Origin: Macrostomum lignano
Taxonomy: Eukaryota
Length of the DNA: 64,000 nt
Assembly: GCA_002269645.1 (NCBI GenBank)
Contig: NIVC01000032.1
Span: forward strand, 1 to 64,000
Reading direction: 5' to 3'
Shown here: in pieces, positions 18,737 through 60,945 of the stretch
Layout of the letters: every line of letters starts with the position of its first letter
Numbering within the stretch: position 1 is the first letter of the stretch
Made by a program: the position numbers and the translations under genes
The notes under the pieces: generated by a model
Told to the model about the DNA's origin: nothing
The model's database searches: none
The model's input: the letters and a program-made list of their open reading frames with translations, nothing else

Positions 18737-20407
18737 ATGAGCCTCAAAGGCTCCAGCGACAGCTCGAGTTCGGACGCGCCGCCCGCTACCCCAACTCCTC
18801 TCTGCATCATCTGCGACCAAGCTGCAGTCGGTGTGGCTCCGTTCTCCCGCTGCCACATGTGCAGTCAACACCTCAGTGTCGATGTGGCCAATCTATTCAA
18901 GCTCAAATATGAGGTCGAAGAGCTGTTGCGTGCCTACTCACAAGAGTCACAAGAGTCACAAGACCCCCAAGAGTCACAAGGCGCAGCAGGTGCAGCTGGC
19001 CGTGCAGCGCTGCTGCGACCAAGACAAGACGCTGAGTCGCTGCGTCGTCTCGCTCTCGACATCCAACAGCAGCTGCAAGAGGTCAATCACAAATTCGATT
19101 TGGTACAGCAACACATCGACTCGTTTCGTAGCAGGGTGACGGGCCAGCTCTCAGGTGTGCTTGAGGCAGTGCGTGTGTGCGAGCGGGACCTCGAGGACGT
19201 CTCCAGCTACAAGCAGGAGGTGGCCACGGCGGAGGCTGCAGGCGACATGGCGGAGCTGCTTCGCCTGGTCCAGTCCATGCACGAATCGCTTGGAGACTTG
19301 GAGGCCGACTTTGAGAGGTCAGAGCGCCTGCTCAGAGACCAGAGCGACAATGAGGAGCTGCAGCTGCGGCTTGTGGGCCAGCTTGAGCGGCTGGTCGGCA
19401 TTTTTGCGGGATGCAGTGAAGAGGGCGACTGGTCGAGAGACGCTGCGGTGACCGCGACATCCGAGGAGATAGACAGAGATATAGCTGCTGAAAAAGAAAA
19501 ACTGCTGTTCGATCCGATGTTCTTTAGTCACGACGTGAAGCTGGATGACCGTGTTTCATGTCTAGCTGTGTGCAGCGACACCAGCGGATTCGTTGGTGAC
19601 CGCTCAGGCCGAGTGGTTTCCGCCGACTCAGCGGGAGACGGCAGCAGGGCTCTGCCTCAGCCCTGCATCCTGGCATCATTCCTTGCGAACAGGGACCACT
19701 TACTGGTGCTCTCTGTGGACGGCTCACAGAAGCTTCGGTGCCACTGCGATATCGACTGGAAGAATATAATCTGGGGCCTTCACTGCGACCGTCAGCTGCT
19801 GTTCATCGCTCAGCCTGACGCAGTGACAGTGACGGACCTGAGCGGTCGCGCGGTGCATCGAGTCCGCCCACACATCGAGGGCTTCGGTGACATCCGTGGA
19901 ATCGGCGGCAACGCAGCCTCCGTGTTTGTGTCCAGCGGAAACAAAATTGCTGCATTCAGCAAAGCGACTTGGCAGATGGAGACGGTCATCACGCTGTCTC
20001 AGCTTCCTGATGCTGATCTGCGCAGCCTGGCAACTCACGACAACTGCATTCTGGTGACCGACTGGAATAAGTGGCAGGTGCACAGAGTGCGCATTGACAC
20101 CCAGCAACTGGTCGCCTCCTTCCCGACTCAGCGTTCCGGTCTCCAACAGTTTGCTCATCCAATCAATGTGGCCGTCGACAGCAGAGGCCGCCTGTTCGTG
20201 AGTGAATATTGGGGTCACTCAGTGCGAGCGGTGGCTGCAGACGACGGGTCGCCAATGTGGACTCTGGGGACTCCGGGCGAGAGCGACAGCGAAGACGGCA
20301 TATCCTGGCATCCATGGGGTCTGGCGGTGGTGACGGGAGGTCCGTGCGAGCAGCTGGTGGTGGCTGACTGGGACATCGGCAGACTGCAGGTGTTCAATGC
20401 ATCCTAA
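18737..20407 (+). CDS. TRIM-NHL-like protein, copy 1 (Cys/His Zn-finger-like motif, coiled coil, NHL/6-bladed beta-propeller; no RING), 556 aa, intronless CDS
   Basis: CIICD..CHMCSQH motif, heptad-rich helical region, NHL-type repeats FAHPINVAVDSRGRLFVSE and PWGLAV..LVVAD..RLQVF. ATG 18737 follows a pyrimidine tract/acceptor and aligns with the ATG of copy 2. Confidence 0.85.
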   Translation: MSLKGSSDSSSSDAPPATPTPLCIICDQAAVGVAPFSRCHMCSQHLSVDVANLFKLKYEVEELLRAYSQESQESQDPQESQGAAGAAGRAALLRPRQDAESLRRLALDIQQQLQEVNHKFDLVQQHIDSFRSRVTGQLSGVLEAVRVCERDLEDVSSYKQEVATAEAAGDMAELLRLVQSMHESLGDLEADFERSERLLRDQSDNEELQLRLVGQLERLVGIFAGCSEEGDWSRDAAVTATSEEIDRDIAAEKEKLLFDPMFFSHDVKLDDRVSCLAVCSDTSGFVGDRSGRVVSADSAGDGSRALPQPCILASFLANRDHLLVLSVDGSQKLRCHCDIDWKNIIWGLHCDRQLLFIAQPDAVTVTDLSGRAVHRVRPHIEGFGDIRGIGGNAASVFVSSGNKIAAFSKATWQMETVITLSQLPDADLRSLATHDNCILVTDWNKWQVHRVRIDTQQLVASFPTQRSGLQQFAHPINVAVDSRGRLFVSEYWGHSVRAVAADDGSPMWTLGTPGESDSEDGISWHPWGLAVVTGGPCEQLVVADWDIGRLQVFNAS

Positions 20408-21079
20408 TTTTATTCACAGAGCTGTGGGGTTTCTTGAGTGATTGATTTATTTGAGGCCTACGCTCGTAGTTTTCGGTCGAGTTTTTCTAATCATGGAATT
20501 TTTAACACTGATGACCTTCTTTGTCTAATAATCGTTTATTATGTCTGGTATACGCAGAACTGATATTTATTAATGTTATTTATTAATAAATTAATTAAAT
20601 ATTAATAAAATTTATCTTTCGTTGGCCCTCAGCACTTCTCTCATTGCTTTTATTTTTCTAGAAGTTTCAGCACCAGAAATTGGACTTGACTGTTGAATTG
20701 AATTTCAGCAAAAATGGCATGCAGTTTGCTTAAATTCCCCTCACTCGCTGCAGACTCAGCGCTCGCTTCTGTGTTGCATTTTCCTCCATGGGTCACTGCT
20801 TTGTGTTTTATATGCCTGGGCACAGGTATTTTTAGCTGGGAACTTATTGTTAAAATATAAGTGCTTCGGAAAGTTGAAACTATCATGTGGCGCTAGAATC
20901 TTCTGAAATGCGTGTGCAAAAGTCAATGCAAATCTTTGCAGAGGTGACGGAAAAAAGTGCAAATCTTACAGGGCTTTGATGTAGATTGGAAGCTGGCTGC
21001 CTACAAAATGTTTTAAGCTGGAGTAGGAGAGGGATGTGGGAATGGGATCTGGGTGGGGGAGACACAGGGAGAATAAGGA

Positions 21080-58727: not shown

Positions 58728-59292
58728 CGCATTTGTCTGCTTCTCTAATTTACTCTGCTATTTGTTTCTGCTTTAATGGCATTTTTATTTATGCAAAATA
58801 CTAAAGCATTTTTAAACCAAAAATTAAATTATTTTTGTACTTTTGTATTTTTTACTTTACGAATTAATTTAATAATCATAATAAACTCCTTAGTAATAAA
58901 TAAACATGAACTCAGCGCTCGTCTCGCTAATTTTCATCGCAATAATTTCCAGTTATTTATATTTTTACAAAACTTTTCTGACCTGCCTGTCTTCAGTTCC
59001 TTTTCTTTTATTGACTGGGACATTGCAAGGTCAAACCAGGTCTCCACTTTTAGGGGTCTCTGACTCGTGTAGGTTCGTGCAGGCCGCCTGTCAGTCACTG
59101 GCACTGCAGCACTGGGCTAGGCAGCTCTCTGGATGGAAATCCACAAGCAGTGAGTTTTGGCTTCGACTGAACTACCTCTGTTGTCGCTATCTTCCCCCCT
59201 CTCTTCCCCCTCTCTCCCCCCTCTTAATCTTTCTCTCACTGCGTTGAGTTTTAACTTCATCTGCTTTTCCGCTCCTCACAGAGAATCAAACA

Positions 59293-60945
59293 ATGAGCCG
59301 CAGAAGCTCCAGCGACAGCTCCAGTTCGGACGCGCCTCCCGCTACCCCAACTCCTCTCTGCATCATCTGCGACCAAGCTGCAGTCGGTGTGGCTCCGTTC
59401 TCCCGCTGCCACATGTGCAGTCAACACCTCAGTGTCGATGTGGCCAATCTATTCAAGCTCAAGGAGGAGGTCGAAGAGCTGCTGCGTGCCTACTCAAAAG
59501 ACTCACAAGAGTCACAAGAGTCACAAGGCGCAGCAGTTTCAGCTGGCCGTGCAGCGCTGATGCGACCAAGACAAGACGCTGAGTCGCTGCGTCGTCTCGC
59601 TCTCGACATCCAACAGCAGCTGCAAGAGGTCAATCACAAATTCGATTTGGTACAGCAACACATCGACTCGTTTCGTAGCAGGGTGACGGGCCAGCTCTCA
59701 GGTGTGCTTGAGGCAGTGCGTGTGTGCGAGCGGGACCTCGAGGACGTCTCCAGCTACAAGCAGGAGGTGGCCACGGCGGAGGCTGCAGGCGACATGGCGG
59801 AGCTGCTTCGCCTGGTGCAGTCCATGCACGAATCGCTTGGAGACTTGGAGGCCGACTTTGAGAGGTCAGAGCGGCTGCTCAGAGACCAGAGCGACAATGA
59901 GGAGCTGCAGCTGCGGCTTCTGGGCCAGCTCGAGCGGCTGGTCGGCATTTGTGCGGGACGCAGCGAAGAGGGCGACTGGTCGAGAGACGCTGCGGTGACC
60001 GCGACATCCGACGAGATAGAAGCTGCTGAGAGAGAGAGACTGCTGTTCGATCCGATGGTCTTCAGTCACGAGGTGAAGCTGGATTATGATGTTACATGGC
60101 TGGCTGTGTGCAGCGACACCAGGGGATTCGTTGGTGACCGCTCAGGCCGTGTGGTTCGCATCGACTCAGCGAGAGACGGCAGCGAGGCTCTGCCTCAGCC
60201 CTGCATCCTGACATCATACTTTTCCGACAGAGACCATCTACTGGTGCTTTCTGTGGACGGCTCACAGAAGCTGCGGTGCCACTGCGACATCGACTGGAAG
60301 AATGACATCCGTGGCCTTCACTGCGACCGTCAGCTGCTGTTCATTGCTCAGCGTGACGCAGTGACAGTGACGGACCTGAGCGGTCGCGTGGTGCGTCGAG
60401 TCCGCCCAGACATCAAGGGCTTCGGTGACATCTGGGGAATCGGCGGCAACGCAGCCTCCGTGTTTGTGTCCAGTGGAAACAAAATTGCTGCAGTCAGCAA
60501 AGCGACTTGGCAGATGGAGACGGTCATCACGCTGTCTCAGCTTCCTGATGCCTATCTGGGCAGCTTGGCGACTCACGACAACTGCATTCTGGTGAGAGAC
60601 TGGATGCACAATCAGGTGCACAGAGTGCGCATCGACACCCAGCAGCTGGTCGCCTCCTTCCCGACTCGGCGTTCCGGCCTCCAACAGTTTGCTTTTCCAT
60701 ATGATGTGGCCGTCGACAGCAGAGACCGCCTGTTCGTGAGTGAATTCGGTGGTGACTCAGTGCGAGCGGTGGCTGCAGACGACGGGTCGCCGCTGTGGAC
60801 TCTGGGGACTCCGGGCGAGAGCGGCAGCGGAGACGACAGATTCAGGGGTCCATGGGGTCTGGCGGTGGTGACGGGAGGTCCGCGCGAGCAGCTGGTGGTG
60901 GCTGACTTGTACAACAAGAGACTGCAGATGTTCAGTGCATCCTAA
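59293..60945 (+). CDS. TRIM-NHL-like protein, copy 2 (Zn-finger-like, coiled coil, NHL propeller), 550 aa, intronless CDS
   Basis: Paralogue of 18737-20407; clear NHL motifs FAFPYDVAVDSRDRLFVSE and FRGPWGLAV..VADLYNKRLQMF. Confidence 0.87.
   Translation: MSRRSSSDSSSSDAPPATPTPLCIICDQAAVGVAPFSRCHMCSQHLSVDVANLFKLKEEVEELLRAYSKDSQESQESQGAAVSAGRAALMRPRQDAESLRRLALDIQQQLQEVNHKFDLVQQHIDSFRSRVTGQLSGVLEAVRVCERDLEDVSSYKQEVATAEAAGDMAELLRLVQSMHESLGDLEADFERSERLLRDQSDNEELQLRLLGQLERLVGICAGRSEEGDWSRDAAVTATSDEIEAAERERLLFDPMVFSHEVKLDYDVTWLAVCSDTRGFVGDRSGRVVRIDSARDGSEALPQPCILTSYFSDRDHLLVLSVDGSQKLRCHCDIDWKNDIRGLHCDRQLLFIAQRDAVTVTDLSGRVVRRVRPDIKGFGDIWGIGGNAASVFVSSGNKIAAVSKATWQMETVITLSQLPDAYLGSLATHDNCILVRDWMHNQVHRVRIDTQQLVASFPTRRSGLQQFAFPYDVAVDSRDRLFVSEFGGDSVRAVAADDGSPLWTLGTPGESGSGDDRFRGPWGLAVVTGGPREQLVVADLYNKRLQMFSAS

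Follow-up and report, generated by a model that had tools for sequence, protein, structure and literature searches.

The closest described relatives of the gene family analysed here are the Brat/TRIM-NHL proteins (Brat, Mei-P26, LIN-41/TRIM71, TRIM2/3 and Thin/TRIM32), which have a zinc motif, a coiled coil and a C-terminal NHL propeller in the same order as the Macrostomum lignano proteins and provide their best sequence and fold matches. As in the M. lignano family, the RING domain is absent from Brat. TRIM-NHL genes are few, with three to five per animal (PMC4015489), and fall into the conserved "group 1" of TRIM proteins (PMC2533329). The side of the NHL propeller formed by the b-c and d-a loops is its top, RNA-binding surface (PMC4015489), and this surface is evolutionarily plastic, supporting distinct RNA-recognition modes (PMC5908797). 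The loops that make up this surface in Brat are those in which the variable residues of the M. lignano family sit. By contrast, the M. lignano family has 18 or more rapidly diversifying copies, a degenerate zinc motif that Pfam does not match as a B-box, and no filamin domain. Its AF2 model has apparently seven short blades rather than six, and its identity to known NHL domains is only 17-20%.

In its evolutionary architecture, the family is like finTRIM and TRIM5alpha. In the accessible part of their description, finTRIMs form a clustered multigene family with near-identical N-terminal regions and positive selection in C-terminal ligand-contact loops (PMC2657112). However, finTRIM and TRIM5alpha recognise their targets through a B30.2/SPRY domain and carry a RING E3, whereas the M. 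lignano proteins have an NHL domain and no RING; moreover, virus induction and antiviral activity have been shown for finTRIM and TRIM5. TRIM "group 2" has been reported to be absent from invertebrates (PMC2533329). TRIM56, as far as the accessible portion of the source goes, has an NHL-like C-terminal domain and restricts viruses through RNA binding (PMC6623546). TRIM56, however, is one conserved gene that includes a RING, not a diversified family, and it serves here as a precedent. Plant NLR LRRs and the MHC likewise combine a scaffold homogenised by gene conversion with diversity kept by selection at solvent-exposed contact residues. The M. lignano family also shares with these systems a raised synonymous divergence near selected sites, although fold and lineage are unrelated.

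Two gene copies and their family

Two copies lie on the forward strand of the window, i.e., the 64,000-nucleotide stretch of M. lignano DNA that was analysed. Copy A (ATG at 18737, stop at 20407; 18737..20407) is a complete, uninterrupted ORF of 556 amino acids; copy B (ATG at 59293, stop at 60945; 59293..60945) is likewise complete and uninterrupted, with 550 amino acids, and is 87% identical to copy A at the amino acid level. In copy A, as in the family, a small zinc motif is followed by a long coiled coil and, after a short disordered linker, by an NHL-like propeller. The zinc-binding, B-box-like motif CxxC...(CH)xCxxH spans residues 23-45 (18803..18871, + strand), and its residues C23, C26, C42 and H45 (CxxC...CxxH) are nearly invariant across the superfamily. 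Pfam zf-B_box gives no match to it, while UniProt labels relatives "B box-type domain-containing". Only 22 residues precede this single zinc motif and no RING is matched in Pfam at E ≤ 1, so that the proteins show no sign of an E3 effector activity of their own. The coiled coil follows at residues 93-212 of copy A (19013..19372, +) and residues 90-209 of copy B (59560..59919, +). Long helices are predicted in the AF2 model at residues 43-73, 85-168 and 171-225, and the proteins are probably dimeric. No signal peptide or transmembrane segment was found in the family proteins, and they look like Brat-type intracellular proteins.

The propeller comprises residues 259-556 of copy A (19511..20404, +) and residues 253-550 of copy B (60049..60942, +). 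The NHL identity proposed in the earlier note is borne out by three lines of evidence. Pfam matches one NHL repeat in each protein, at 22.3 and 24.6 bits and above the cut-off of 20, and shows NHL only, without SPRY; phmmer against the PDB finds Thin, TRIM71 and TRIM2/3 with E-values of 6e-12 to 1e-8; and Foldseek aligns the model to the NHL domains of Thin, TRIM71 and TRIM2 with TM 0.74-0.76 and an rmsd of 3.9 Å. By E-value, seven-bladed WD40s head the Foldseek ranking. The AF2 propeller has a pLDDT of 84-95, and DSSP assigns 26-27 strands to it, suggesting seven short blades where the canonical NHL domain has six.

Both genes lie in duplicated units, which were delimited by blastn of the window against itself and, for copy A, also by the divergence profile. 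The unit around copy A (18623..20712, +) matches that around copy B (59176..61264, +) at 87% nucleotide identity. The copy B unit lies inside a segment at 47.6-61.0 kb that is collinear with locus L005 at about 92-93% nucleotide identity. Near copy B lies a gene for the ribonucleotide reductase small subunit (RNR-R2; 54965..56161, +; Pfam 1e-115), which differs from its L005 copy with a dS of 0.059 and an omega of 0.11 and serves as an internal control, both neutral and for constraint, for the segment pair of copy B and paralogue P0006. Upstream of the start codons, we predict putative 5'-UTR introns from consensus motifs only, i.e., a GTGAGT donor, a polypyrimidine tract and a CAG acceptor, at 18536..18715 (+) in copy A, where the acceptor lies 21 nt before the ATG and may alternatively be a trans-splice acceptor, and at 59150..59281 (+) in copy B. 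The sole run of Ns in the window, an assembly gap at 40874..41588, lies 20.5 kb past the stop of copy A and 17.7 kb ahead of the start of copy B in AT-rich intergenic DNA with no real ORF across it. Because this gap is outside both genes, it bears only on the linkage and distance of the two copies and not on their reading frames.

Copies A and B are not alone. In about 240 kb examined, the family has at least 18 copies, fragments included, of which 11 are intact; tandem arrays as well as dispersed copies are present, and the 54-kb locus L001 holds eight copies. Several array members are frameshifted or truncated, and among the public gene models, too, several are chimeras or carry frameshifts. 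All pairs have 82-90% amino acid identity, so the copies are about equidistant, and all 17 word-index matches to the family are from M. lignano. The best explanation is that copies A and B are members of a Macrostomum-specific multigene family of tandem arrays and dispersed or homeologous duplicates. Our literature search found no published description of this NHL-propeller family, and its gene IDs, which we looked for in paper texts and supplementary tables in connection with expression, induction or binding, were not found there.

A converted coiled coil and a diversified propeller face

The earlier note had described a constant stalk joined to a hypervariable propeller, and the comparison of copies A and B agrees with this description down to its particulars. 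The 119-residue stretch RPRQD..QLRL (residues 94-212) is identical in the two copies, with exactly two synonymous differences, at codons 178 and 197; over residues 93-212 of copy A, there are two synonymous differences and one nonsynonymous difference. In the propeller, where some 54 differing residues had been estimated, we count 54 amino acid differences from residue 257 on. These include all the listed motif pairs (DDRVSC/DYDVTW, NIIWG/NDIRG, DIRG/DIWG, ADLRS/AYLGS, TDWNKW/RDWMHN, AHPIN/AFPYD, EYWGH/EFGGD, DSEDGISWH/GSGDDRFRG and DWDIG/DLYNK), and many of the differing codons carry two or three nucleotide changes. The differences are also clustered: nine other paralogues define 30 hypervariable codons, and A and B differ at 24 of these, compared to 30 of 268 elsewhere (Fisher p = 3e-15).

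The near-identity of the stalk stands, but it extends to synonymous sites. In the family mean, the coil has a dS of only 0.025 and a dN of 0.017, while dS in the propeller is 0.137; nucleotide divergence rises from 0.006-0.03 in the coil through 0.03-0.2 in the propeller to 0.25-0.45 in the non-coding flanks. Flanks that are 25-45% diverged indicate that the duplications are old, and the near-identity of the coil also at synonymous sites, while the flanks have diverged, indicates gene conversion and not merely constraint. A GENECONV-style permutation test detects three globally significant shared tracts, and mosaic tracts of about 30-40 codons are found inside the propeller also. Thus, the invariance of the stalk is mainly the outcome of concerted evolution by gene conversion, which is strongest in the 5' half.

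Diversifying selection in the propeller was assessed with hand-written codon site models rather than PAML or HyPhy. The comparison of M2a with M1a gives 2dlnL = 315 with omega2 = 9.7 and p2 = 0.10, a statistic that the demonstrated recombination between paralogues can inflate; with three segments on their own trees, the same sites are recovered at 2dlnL of 68, 76 and 184. Twenty-five codons are selected at P > 0.9 (copy A codons 271, 272, 274, 300, 303, 316, 319, 343, 344, 346, 360, 372, 387, 425, 427, 441, 444, 474, 476, 491, 492, 524, 545, 546 and 548). The conserved framework has an omega0 of about 0.17. Across the propeller, dN/dS is not well below 1 (0.87-1.18), but for A and B the pairwise value over the whole propeller is 0.89 and not above 1, so that the excess is site-specific and lies in a codon class of about 10% with omega 4-10. 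When copy B is compared with its positional partner P0006, the 25 sites have a dN of 0.97 against a neutral yardstick of 0.06-0.08 from RNR-R2 dS and flanks, and 18 of the 25 sites have changed between these homeologous copies.

These sites are structurally coherent. With faces assigned from the DSSP strand topology of the AF2 model under our own strand labelling, 17 of the 18 selected sites in blades 3-7 map to b-c or d-a loops or to the ends of the strands next to them (p = 9e-6). The variable residues are thus found mainly on one face rather than scattered over the structure, with exceptions at 300, 303, 316 and 319 in the short N-terminal blades; by the same labelling, four or five selected sites (300, 303, 316, 319 and 372) are on the opposite face. 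In the distant pair P0015/P0016, which was used as a negative control, the differences are scattered. Selected sites are enriched in Tyr (21-fold), Trp (3.5-fold), Arg/Lys (about 2.5-fold) and also Asn, and, depending on the paralogue, the variable top-face sites have a net charge between -1 and +7. The enrichment in Arg, Lys, Tyr and Trp and this charge would be no more than indirect pointers to RNA binding by an electropositive top surface. Altogether, the earlier reading of a constant stalk with a diversified binding face is supported, while the receptor or immune role that was attached to it remains an inference for proteins that look intracellular and lack a RING.

Alternative sources of the variation

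That the differences are sequencing errors in mis-assembled alleles or collapsed repeats has next to no probability. M. lignano is a hidden polyploid whose genome is hard to assemble, according to the accessible part of one report (PMC10468722), a gap separates the two copies, and faulty gene models occur in the family. However, both ORFs are intact, the loop strings specific to copy B recur in the fusion gene model P0012 of an older, independent assembly, and another assembly has nine more intact genes with the same hypervariable columns. Moreover, the differences are codon-structured, fall at codon positions 1-2 and come without indels, which is not error-like. Local hypermutation of a deaminase-like, DGR-like or error-prone-repair type, or relaxed constraint and decay, would generate variation with no selection for diversity. 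The synonymous rate is indeed 2.6-fold higher at the fast, selected codons, where pairs with the same amino acid differ in codon at 0.173 compared to 0.074 elsewhere, and the damaged array members are in line with decay. This raised synonymous rate fits hitch-hiking of old variants and also some local mutational bias. But when the fast class is given a free synonymous rate, a neutral hotspot is rejected in favour of omega = 3.8 (2dlnL = 38.6, p = 5e-10). Substitutions spread over all six base-pair classes with a ts/tv of 0.62 and no A- or C-specific pattern, in contrast to the base-specific signature of DGR-like or deaminase-driven systems. Eleven intact ORFs, a strongly conserved framework and the structural coherence of the variable sites also speak against mutation or decay alone, and we consider this explanation very improbable.

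There are also two functional alternatives. The proteins might be sub-functionalised regulators of the animal's own mRNAs, e.g., in neoblasts, with a separate set of mRNAs for every paralogue; the surface differences would then date from an earlier specialisation and not from an arms race that is still going on. The plasticity of the NHL top surface (PMC5908797) and the basic and aromatic residues at the variable sites would suit such regulators; nevertheless, if purifying selection had set in after specialisation, one would not expect an omega of 4-10, 18 of 25 sites changed between homeologous copies at a neutral divergence of only about 0.06-0.08, or single columns with seven to nine different residues across the 11 paralogues, and we consider this reading quite unlikely. 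Alternatively, the family could act in reproduction rather than defence, in gametes or the germline of a hermaphrodite with intense sperm competition, for example by binding germline mRNAs in the manner of Mei-P26 and LIN-41 or by taking part in the recognition of gametes or partners. Brat, Mei-P26 and LIN-41 are classic regulators of mRNAs in germline and stem cells, reproduction-related Macrostomum genes evolve rapidly, as described in the accessible part of one study (PMC7336406), and the diversifying selection measured here is equally compatible with sexual conflict. On the other hand, the lack of a signal peptide or transmembrane segment makes a secreted seminal or surface recognition role unlikely, and many equidistant paralogues with unique surfaces are more typical of proteins that recognise diverse foreign targets. 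We regard a reproductive role as rather unlikely.

A candidate repertoire of intracellular recognition modules

We are confident that gene conversion together with diversifying selection focused on one face is the evolutionary mechanism. Conversion keeps the coding region alike between old duplicates, most strongly in the 5' half, while diversifying selection (omega about 4-10) holds about 25 codons different in every paralogue, most of them on the top face, the side with which Brat, LIN-41 and Mei-P26 bind RNA or protein. The identical coiled coils could allow dimerisation, possibly across paralogues, so as to present two propellers, and the top face of each paralogue may have its own ligand specificity. 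A pattern of this kind is seen in recognition proteins engaged in arms races, e.g., TRIM5 and the finTRIMs of fish, and we infer a role in recognising fast-evolving targets, such as viral or transposon RNA or protein. The family would then work as a repertoire of recognition modules, encoded in the germline and acting inside the cell, that keeps up with fast-changing targets, most likely RNAs or proteins of viruses or retroelements, with a restriction-factor-like function analogous to that of TRIM5alpha, finTRIM and the NHL-like antiviral TRIM56. We favour this explanation as a whole, with its converted scaffold, diversified top face and intracellular recognition repertoire, as somewhat the more probable account; the anti-parasite function within it, suggested by analogy, is put forward tentatively.

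In its boldest form, which is possible but doubtful, the family would be the first germline-encoded variable NHL-propeller repertoire, with dozens of intracellular coiled-coil dimers, perhaps combinatorial heterodimers formed via the identical stalks, each carrying a top face specific for its own viral or retroelement RNA or protein. If true, a flatworm would possess an NHL-based analogue of the TRIM5/finTRIM restriction factors in a lineage without the SPRY-TRIM group.

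Two paralogues and their surroundings

The two NHL-propeller paralogues of the window belong to an old, clustered family. Its coding region is homogenised by gene conversion, above all in the half that carries the zinc motif and the coil, and strong diversifying selection keeps unique residues at ~25 positions, mostly on the top face of the propeller. Copy A (ATG at 18737, stop at 20407; 556 aa) and copy B (59293-60945; 550 aa) are uninterrupted ORFs on the forward strand with 87% identity in a protein alignment, and the outer limits that the earlier note gave for the pair, 18737 and 60945, are exactly the ATG of copy A and the stop of copy B. 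The 119-aa coil (residues 94-212, RPRQD...QLRL), which by eye had seemed identical with about two synonymous differences, is identical and differs at exactly two synonymous nucleotides, in codons 178 and 197. From residue 257 on, we counted 54 amino-acid differences, many of them in codons with 2-3 nucleotide changes, as the earlier note had estimated for the propeller, and every motif pair that it listed is present.

By self-comparison of the window, the two copies lie in a duplicated unit of ~2.1 kb with 87% identity (18623-20712 and 59176-61264, forward strand), and tblastn detected no third family copy within the 64 kb. This unit is barely longer than the single-exon CDS, which prompted us to consider a retrocopy origin. 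However, both copies retain a GTGAGT donor, a polypyrimidine tract and a CAG acceptor closely 5' of the ATG, which read as a putative 5'-UTR intron or trans-splice site, and family members occur in tandem arrays; a retrocopy origin was therefore rejected. The sole N run in the window (40874-41588) falls in AT-rich DNA that is free of ORFs, with copy A ending 20.5 kb before it and copy B starting 17.7 kb after it. It bears only on how the copies are linked and spaced, not on their reading frames or the duplicated units.

Copy A is flanked on both sides by one 10-bp minisatellite in inverted orientation (CCCCTGTCTC upstream, 15783-16168; GGGAGACAGG downstream, 21090-22117; ~80% identity over ~550 bp). 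We considered a transposon-borne gene and rejected it, the inverted minisatellite being found around copy A only and not at copy B or other loci. Because the arrays flanking copy B are unrelated and the genome is minisatellite-rich, the arrangement is probably coincidental; it could promote local rearrangement. Long minisatellites are unusually abundant in the window (12086-14316, 23155-26253, 54075-54975, 56273-58482, 61786-62168 and 62385-62973) and include a 16-mer (x137), 27-mer arrays (~3 kb in total), a 21-mer (x43), a 34-mer (x65), a 38-mer and a 25-mer; some have a strong strand skew, and many give rise to long spurious ORFs. On the forward strand, the neighbouring genes are a SETDB1-like histone methyltransferase, represented by exons at 47447-48013 and 51457-52356 (Tudor_5, Pre-SET and SET), and the ribonucleotide reductase small subunit RNR-R2 (54965-56161; one uninterrupted ORF; Pfam, 1e-115), whose true start is probably downstream of the listed one, which abuts a 21-bp minisatellite. 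On the reverse strand, a 678-aa ORF (30185-32221) is a putative gene; a 27-nt minisatellite in translation (MPLRIATDT/NAIKNRHRH units) makes up the N-terminal third, and the C-terminal part, which matches no Pfam family, is rich in Cys/His and Gln.

A clustered family and gene conversion in its coil

All matches to the family in a collection of 5.8 billion proteins come from Macrostomum lignano, to which the window is thereby assigned. A census of the window and the contigs encoding these proteins, covering ~240 kb, recovered 18 close copies, 11 of them with intact ORFs; the "paralogues" counted include homeologues, the genome being that of a hidden polyploid. The pair thus does not stand alone, the case that the earlier note had named as speaking against a variable family. 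One contig, L001, holds a tandem array of eight copies or fragments in 54 kb, and further copies lie on other contigs. The intact copies are roughly equidistant (82-90% amino-acid identity). More divergent relatives at 45-57% identity are also present in the scanned contigs, and searching 1.84 billion representatives exhaustively with HMMER added subfamilies at 28-45% identity; of those looked up, eight proved to be M. lignano proteins, and two, at 43-45% identity, lie on short metagenome contigs. Besides this metagenome pair, the same search returned from outside Macrostomum only generic multi-NHL-repeat proteins that match the last blades. Clusters at 90% identity contain 2-5 members in the other subfamilies, compared to 1-2 sequences per member of the present subfamily. 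Divergent members (45-49% identity) adjoin close ones at L004 12787-14214 (forward strand) and L006 15157-16854 (reverse strand), and the subfamilies are therefore physically interleaved.

Contig L005 is collinear with 47.6-61.0 kb of the window (SETDB1-like gene, RNR-R2, minisatellite and copy B) at a uniform nucleotide identity of 92-93%. The two are homeologous or duplicated segments, and copy B and P0006, the NHL gene of L005, therefore form a positional pair. In L005, too, the SETDB1-like gene precedes P0006, so that the synteny of the duplicated segment is conserved.

Frameshifts, splits or truncations disrupt several members of the arrays (L001 10001-11655, 17490-17975, 34555-36208 and 46774-48536; L006 17547-19206), which reflects either birth-and-death turnover or long-read indel errors. 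The broken L001 copies at 10001 and 34555 have an identical C-terminal ORF, suggesting a recent internal duplication of the array. Public gene models of the family are often chimeric (P0002, P0007, P0009, P0012, P0014 and P0017). The GenBank model P0002 (L001 10001-44269) joins two paralogues over 34 kb and cannot be translated from its locus; P0012, an old frameshifted fusion of RNR-R2 and an NHL gene, holds loop strings specific to copy B; and others fuse NHL genes with RNR-R2, WD40 or Rap-GAP neighbours. With current annotations, the size and expression of the family are thus mis-estimated.

Mean dS, taken over all 55 pairwise comparisons of intact paralogues, is lowest in the coil (0.025), intermediate in the zinc-motif region (0.060) and highest in the propeller (0.137); dN/dS in the coil is 0.68. 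Along the unit, divergence per nucleotide rises from 0.006-0.03 in the coil to 0.03-0.2 in the propeller and reaches 0.25-0.45 in the flanking non-coding DNA directly outside the CDS. Thus, the coils of old paralogues differ less at synonymous sites than RNR-R2 does between the homeologous segments (dS 0.059), despite the diverged flanks, and the coil is therefore kept alike by ongoing gene conversion, i.e., concerted evolution, and not solely by purifying selection on the protein. The earlier note had described an invariant stalk; its sameness holds, but pure constraint does not account for it, the near-identical synonymous sites pointing to homogenisation. A GENECONV-style permutation test also found three globally significant shared tracts of ~30-40 codons within the propeller, in different pairs, one of which is shared by copy B and L005 (codons 333-371).

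Diversifying selection, mostly on one face of the propeller

DIVERSIFYING selection acts on specific codons of the propeller, and the variable columns recur across paralogues: column 344 has nine different residues among the 11 paralogues, and columns 387, 444, 476, 491, 545, 546 and 548 have seven each. With hypervariable sites defined from the nine paralogues outside the window, copies A and B differ at 24/30 of these sites compared to 30/268 others (p = 3e-15). The Nei-Gojobori method gave an omega of ~0.9 for the hypervariable codons of A and B, a value that we regarded as artefactual, produced by path-averaging where codons are saturated and differ at 2-3 nucleotides; maximum-likelihood codon models were used instead. 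Leave-pair-out sums gave an omega of 1.81 at hypervariable sites versus 0.62 elsewhere.

Hand-written GY94/F3x4 site models gave an omega of 1.04 under M0. The site-model analysis of dN/dS proposed in the earlier note, run as M2a against M1a, strongly favoured selection (lnL -3941.1 and -4098.8, respectively; 2dlnL = 315), with 10% of codons at an omega of 9.7 and 25 sites with a posterior >0.9. Because M2a may take a mutational hotspot for selection, we also fitted a fast class with a free synonymous rate. In this class, a free omega (lnL -3935.8) was preferred over an omega fixed at 1 (lnL -3955.1; 2dlnL = 38.6, p = 5e-10), and the estimates were an omega of 3.8 and a 2.6x synonymous rate. 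Recombination occurs among the paralogues and can inflate site-model tests; three propeller segments refitted with their own trees gave 2dlnL of 68, 76 and 184 at the same sites. For the positional pair B/P0006, 18/25 selected sites differ (dN = 0.97), and the remaining propeller has a dN of 0.05 and a dS of 0.075; for RNR-R2, omega between the window and L005 is 0.11. As a negative control, the P0015/P0016 pair from the distant subfamilies is not enriched for differences at homologous sites, its differences being scattered. In the N-terminal half, M2a flagged only residues 4-5 and none in the coil. These two codons, just after the start (18746-18751 and 59302-59307), are hypervariable, with 5-6 residue types among the 11 paralogues.

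Pfam reports one NHL repeat above the gathering threshold in copy A and copy B alike, and phmmer against PDB sequences matched the NHL domains of Drosophila Thin, TRIM71 and TRIM2/3 (E 6e-12 to 1e-8). An AlphaFold2 model based on an alignment of 13 family sequences predicts the propeller with confidence (residues ~260-556, pLDDT mostly 84-95); long helices (43-73, 85-168 and 171-225) and then a disordered linker precede it. The top Foldseek TM-scores are to the NHL domains of Thin (6xg7), TRIM71 (8j72) and TRIM2 (7b2r), with TMt 0.74-0.76 and rmsd ~3.9 Å; by E-value, seven-bladed WD40s come first. Because DSSP counts 26-27 strands, the model may have seven short blades rather than the canonical six. 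At the N-terminus, one zinc motif is conserved, CxxC...CxxH (C23, C26, C42 and H45), which UniProt labels "B box-type" in relatives and which has no Pfam match. Pfam and sequence checks detected neither a RING nor a filamin domain in the two copies, and no signal peptide and no TM segment either. In layout, the proteins thus resemble Brat (zinc motif, coiled coil, NHL) and are intracellular.

A four-stranded blade has its b-c and d-a loops on one face, opposite the a-b and c-d loops. The b-c/d-a face is by definition the NHL top surface, the RNA-binding platform of Brat (PMC4015489), and its plasticity underlies the differing RNA-recognition modes of Brat and LIN-41 (PMC5908797). Assigned from the predicted topology (DSSP strands of the AlphaFold2 model), 14/22 assignable selected sites fall in b-c or d-a loops and three more at adjoining strand ends. 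The single binding face proposed in the earlier note is borne out in blades 3-7, where the predicted topology is unambiguous and 17/18 selected sites lie on the b-c/d-a side (Fisher p = 9e-6), but not by sites 300, 303, 316 and 319, which are placed in c-d and a-b loops of two short N-terminal blades and may form a small second patch. Sites 343, 344 and 346 precede a strand a, with no detectable strand d. The selected positions recur beside the Pro in "FAxPxDVAV" and at positions 1, 2 and 4 after "VAD", where the earlier note had located the variability. Among the residues at selected sites, Tyr is overrepresented 21x, Trp 3.5x, and Arg and Lys ~2.5x, and Asn is also enriched; the net charge of these sites ranges from -1 to +7 across paralogues.

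A candidate recognition repertoire

We suggest that the common coil would mediate dimerisation, as in TRIM proteins, possibly between paralogues, and that each propeller would have its own ligand specificity. The family would then constitute a repertoire of intracellular recognition modules directed against fast-evolving targets. By analogy with TRIM5alpha, finTRIM and the RNA-binding antiviral TRIM56, we tentatively favour viral or retroelement RNA or protein as these targets. A reproductive or sexual-conflict role is less likely, and sub-functionalised endogenous RNA regulators are somewhat less likely again. Searches of paper texts for six Mlig gene IDs, and of the supplements of PMC5730564, PMC12896417 and PMC5946080, returned nothing on expression or function. 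Hypermutation or decay is very improbable given that omega is 3.8 even with a free synonymous rate and that the selected codons have no base-specific signature (ts/tv 0.62, all substitution classes present), which argues against deaminase- or DGR-like targeted mutagenesis; 60% of the differing selected codons vary at 2-3 nucleotides. We give an artefact hardly any credence.

The TRIM-NHL proteins are seen as few in number and deeply conserved, with roles as developmental RNA regulators. NHL TRIMs are assigned to the conserved "group 1", and the fast-evolving, arms-race "group 2" TRIMs of the SPRY type are described as vertebrate-specific and absent from invertebrates (PMC2533329). The Macrostomum family differs from canonical TRIM-NHL proteins in having no RING or filamin domain and a doubtful B-box and is, like Brat, a RING-less NHL protein by architecture. 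It resembles the SPRY-type TRIMs in evolutionary behaviour, but on an NHL propeller. The N-termini of TRIM5alpha/finTRIM are described as nearly identical and their contact loops as being under positive selection (PMC2657112), and TRIM56 is described as RNA-binding, antiviral and NHL-like (PMC6623546). The full finTRIM/TRIM5 signature, i.e., a cluster, a homogenised N-terminus and positive selection focused on the ligand face, is also found in the Macrostomum family. Our literature search returned no paper tying Macrostomum to NHL, TRIM or B-box genes and no NHL family or invertebrate NHL expansion described under diversifying selection. Thus, the principle of a clustered recognition family shaped by conversion and focused positive selection is known, and the scaffold and lineage are new.

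Little is understood of how flatworms mount innate immunity or control transposons. M. lignano is amenable to transgenesis and RNAi, and the hypothesis is therefore directly testable. The locus shows, in a clean natural case, how gene conversion and diversifying selection act on adjoining parts of one gene, and the NHL top-surface variants of the family amount to a natural library for studies of RNA or protein specificity. A finTRIM/TRIM5-style signature on a flatworm NHL propeller would represent a convergent recognition repertoire built on a different scaffold.
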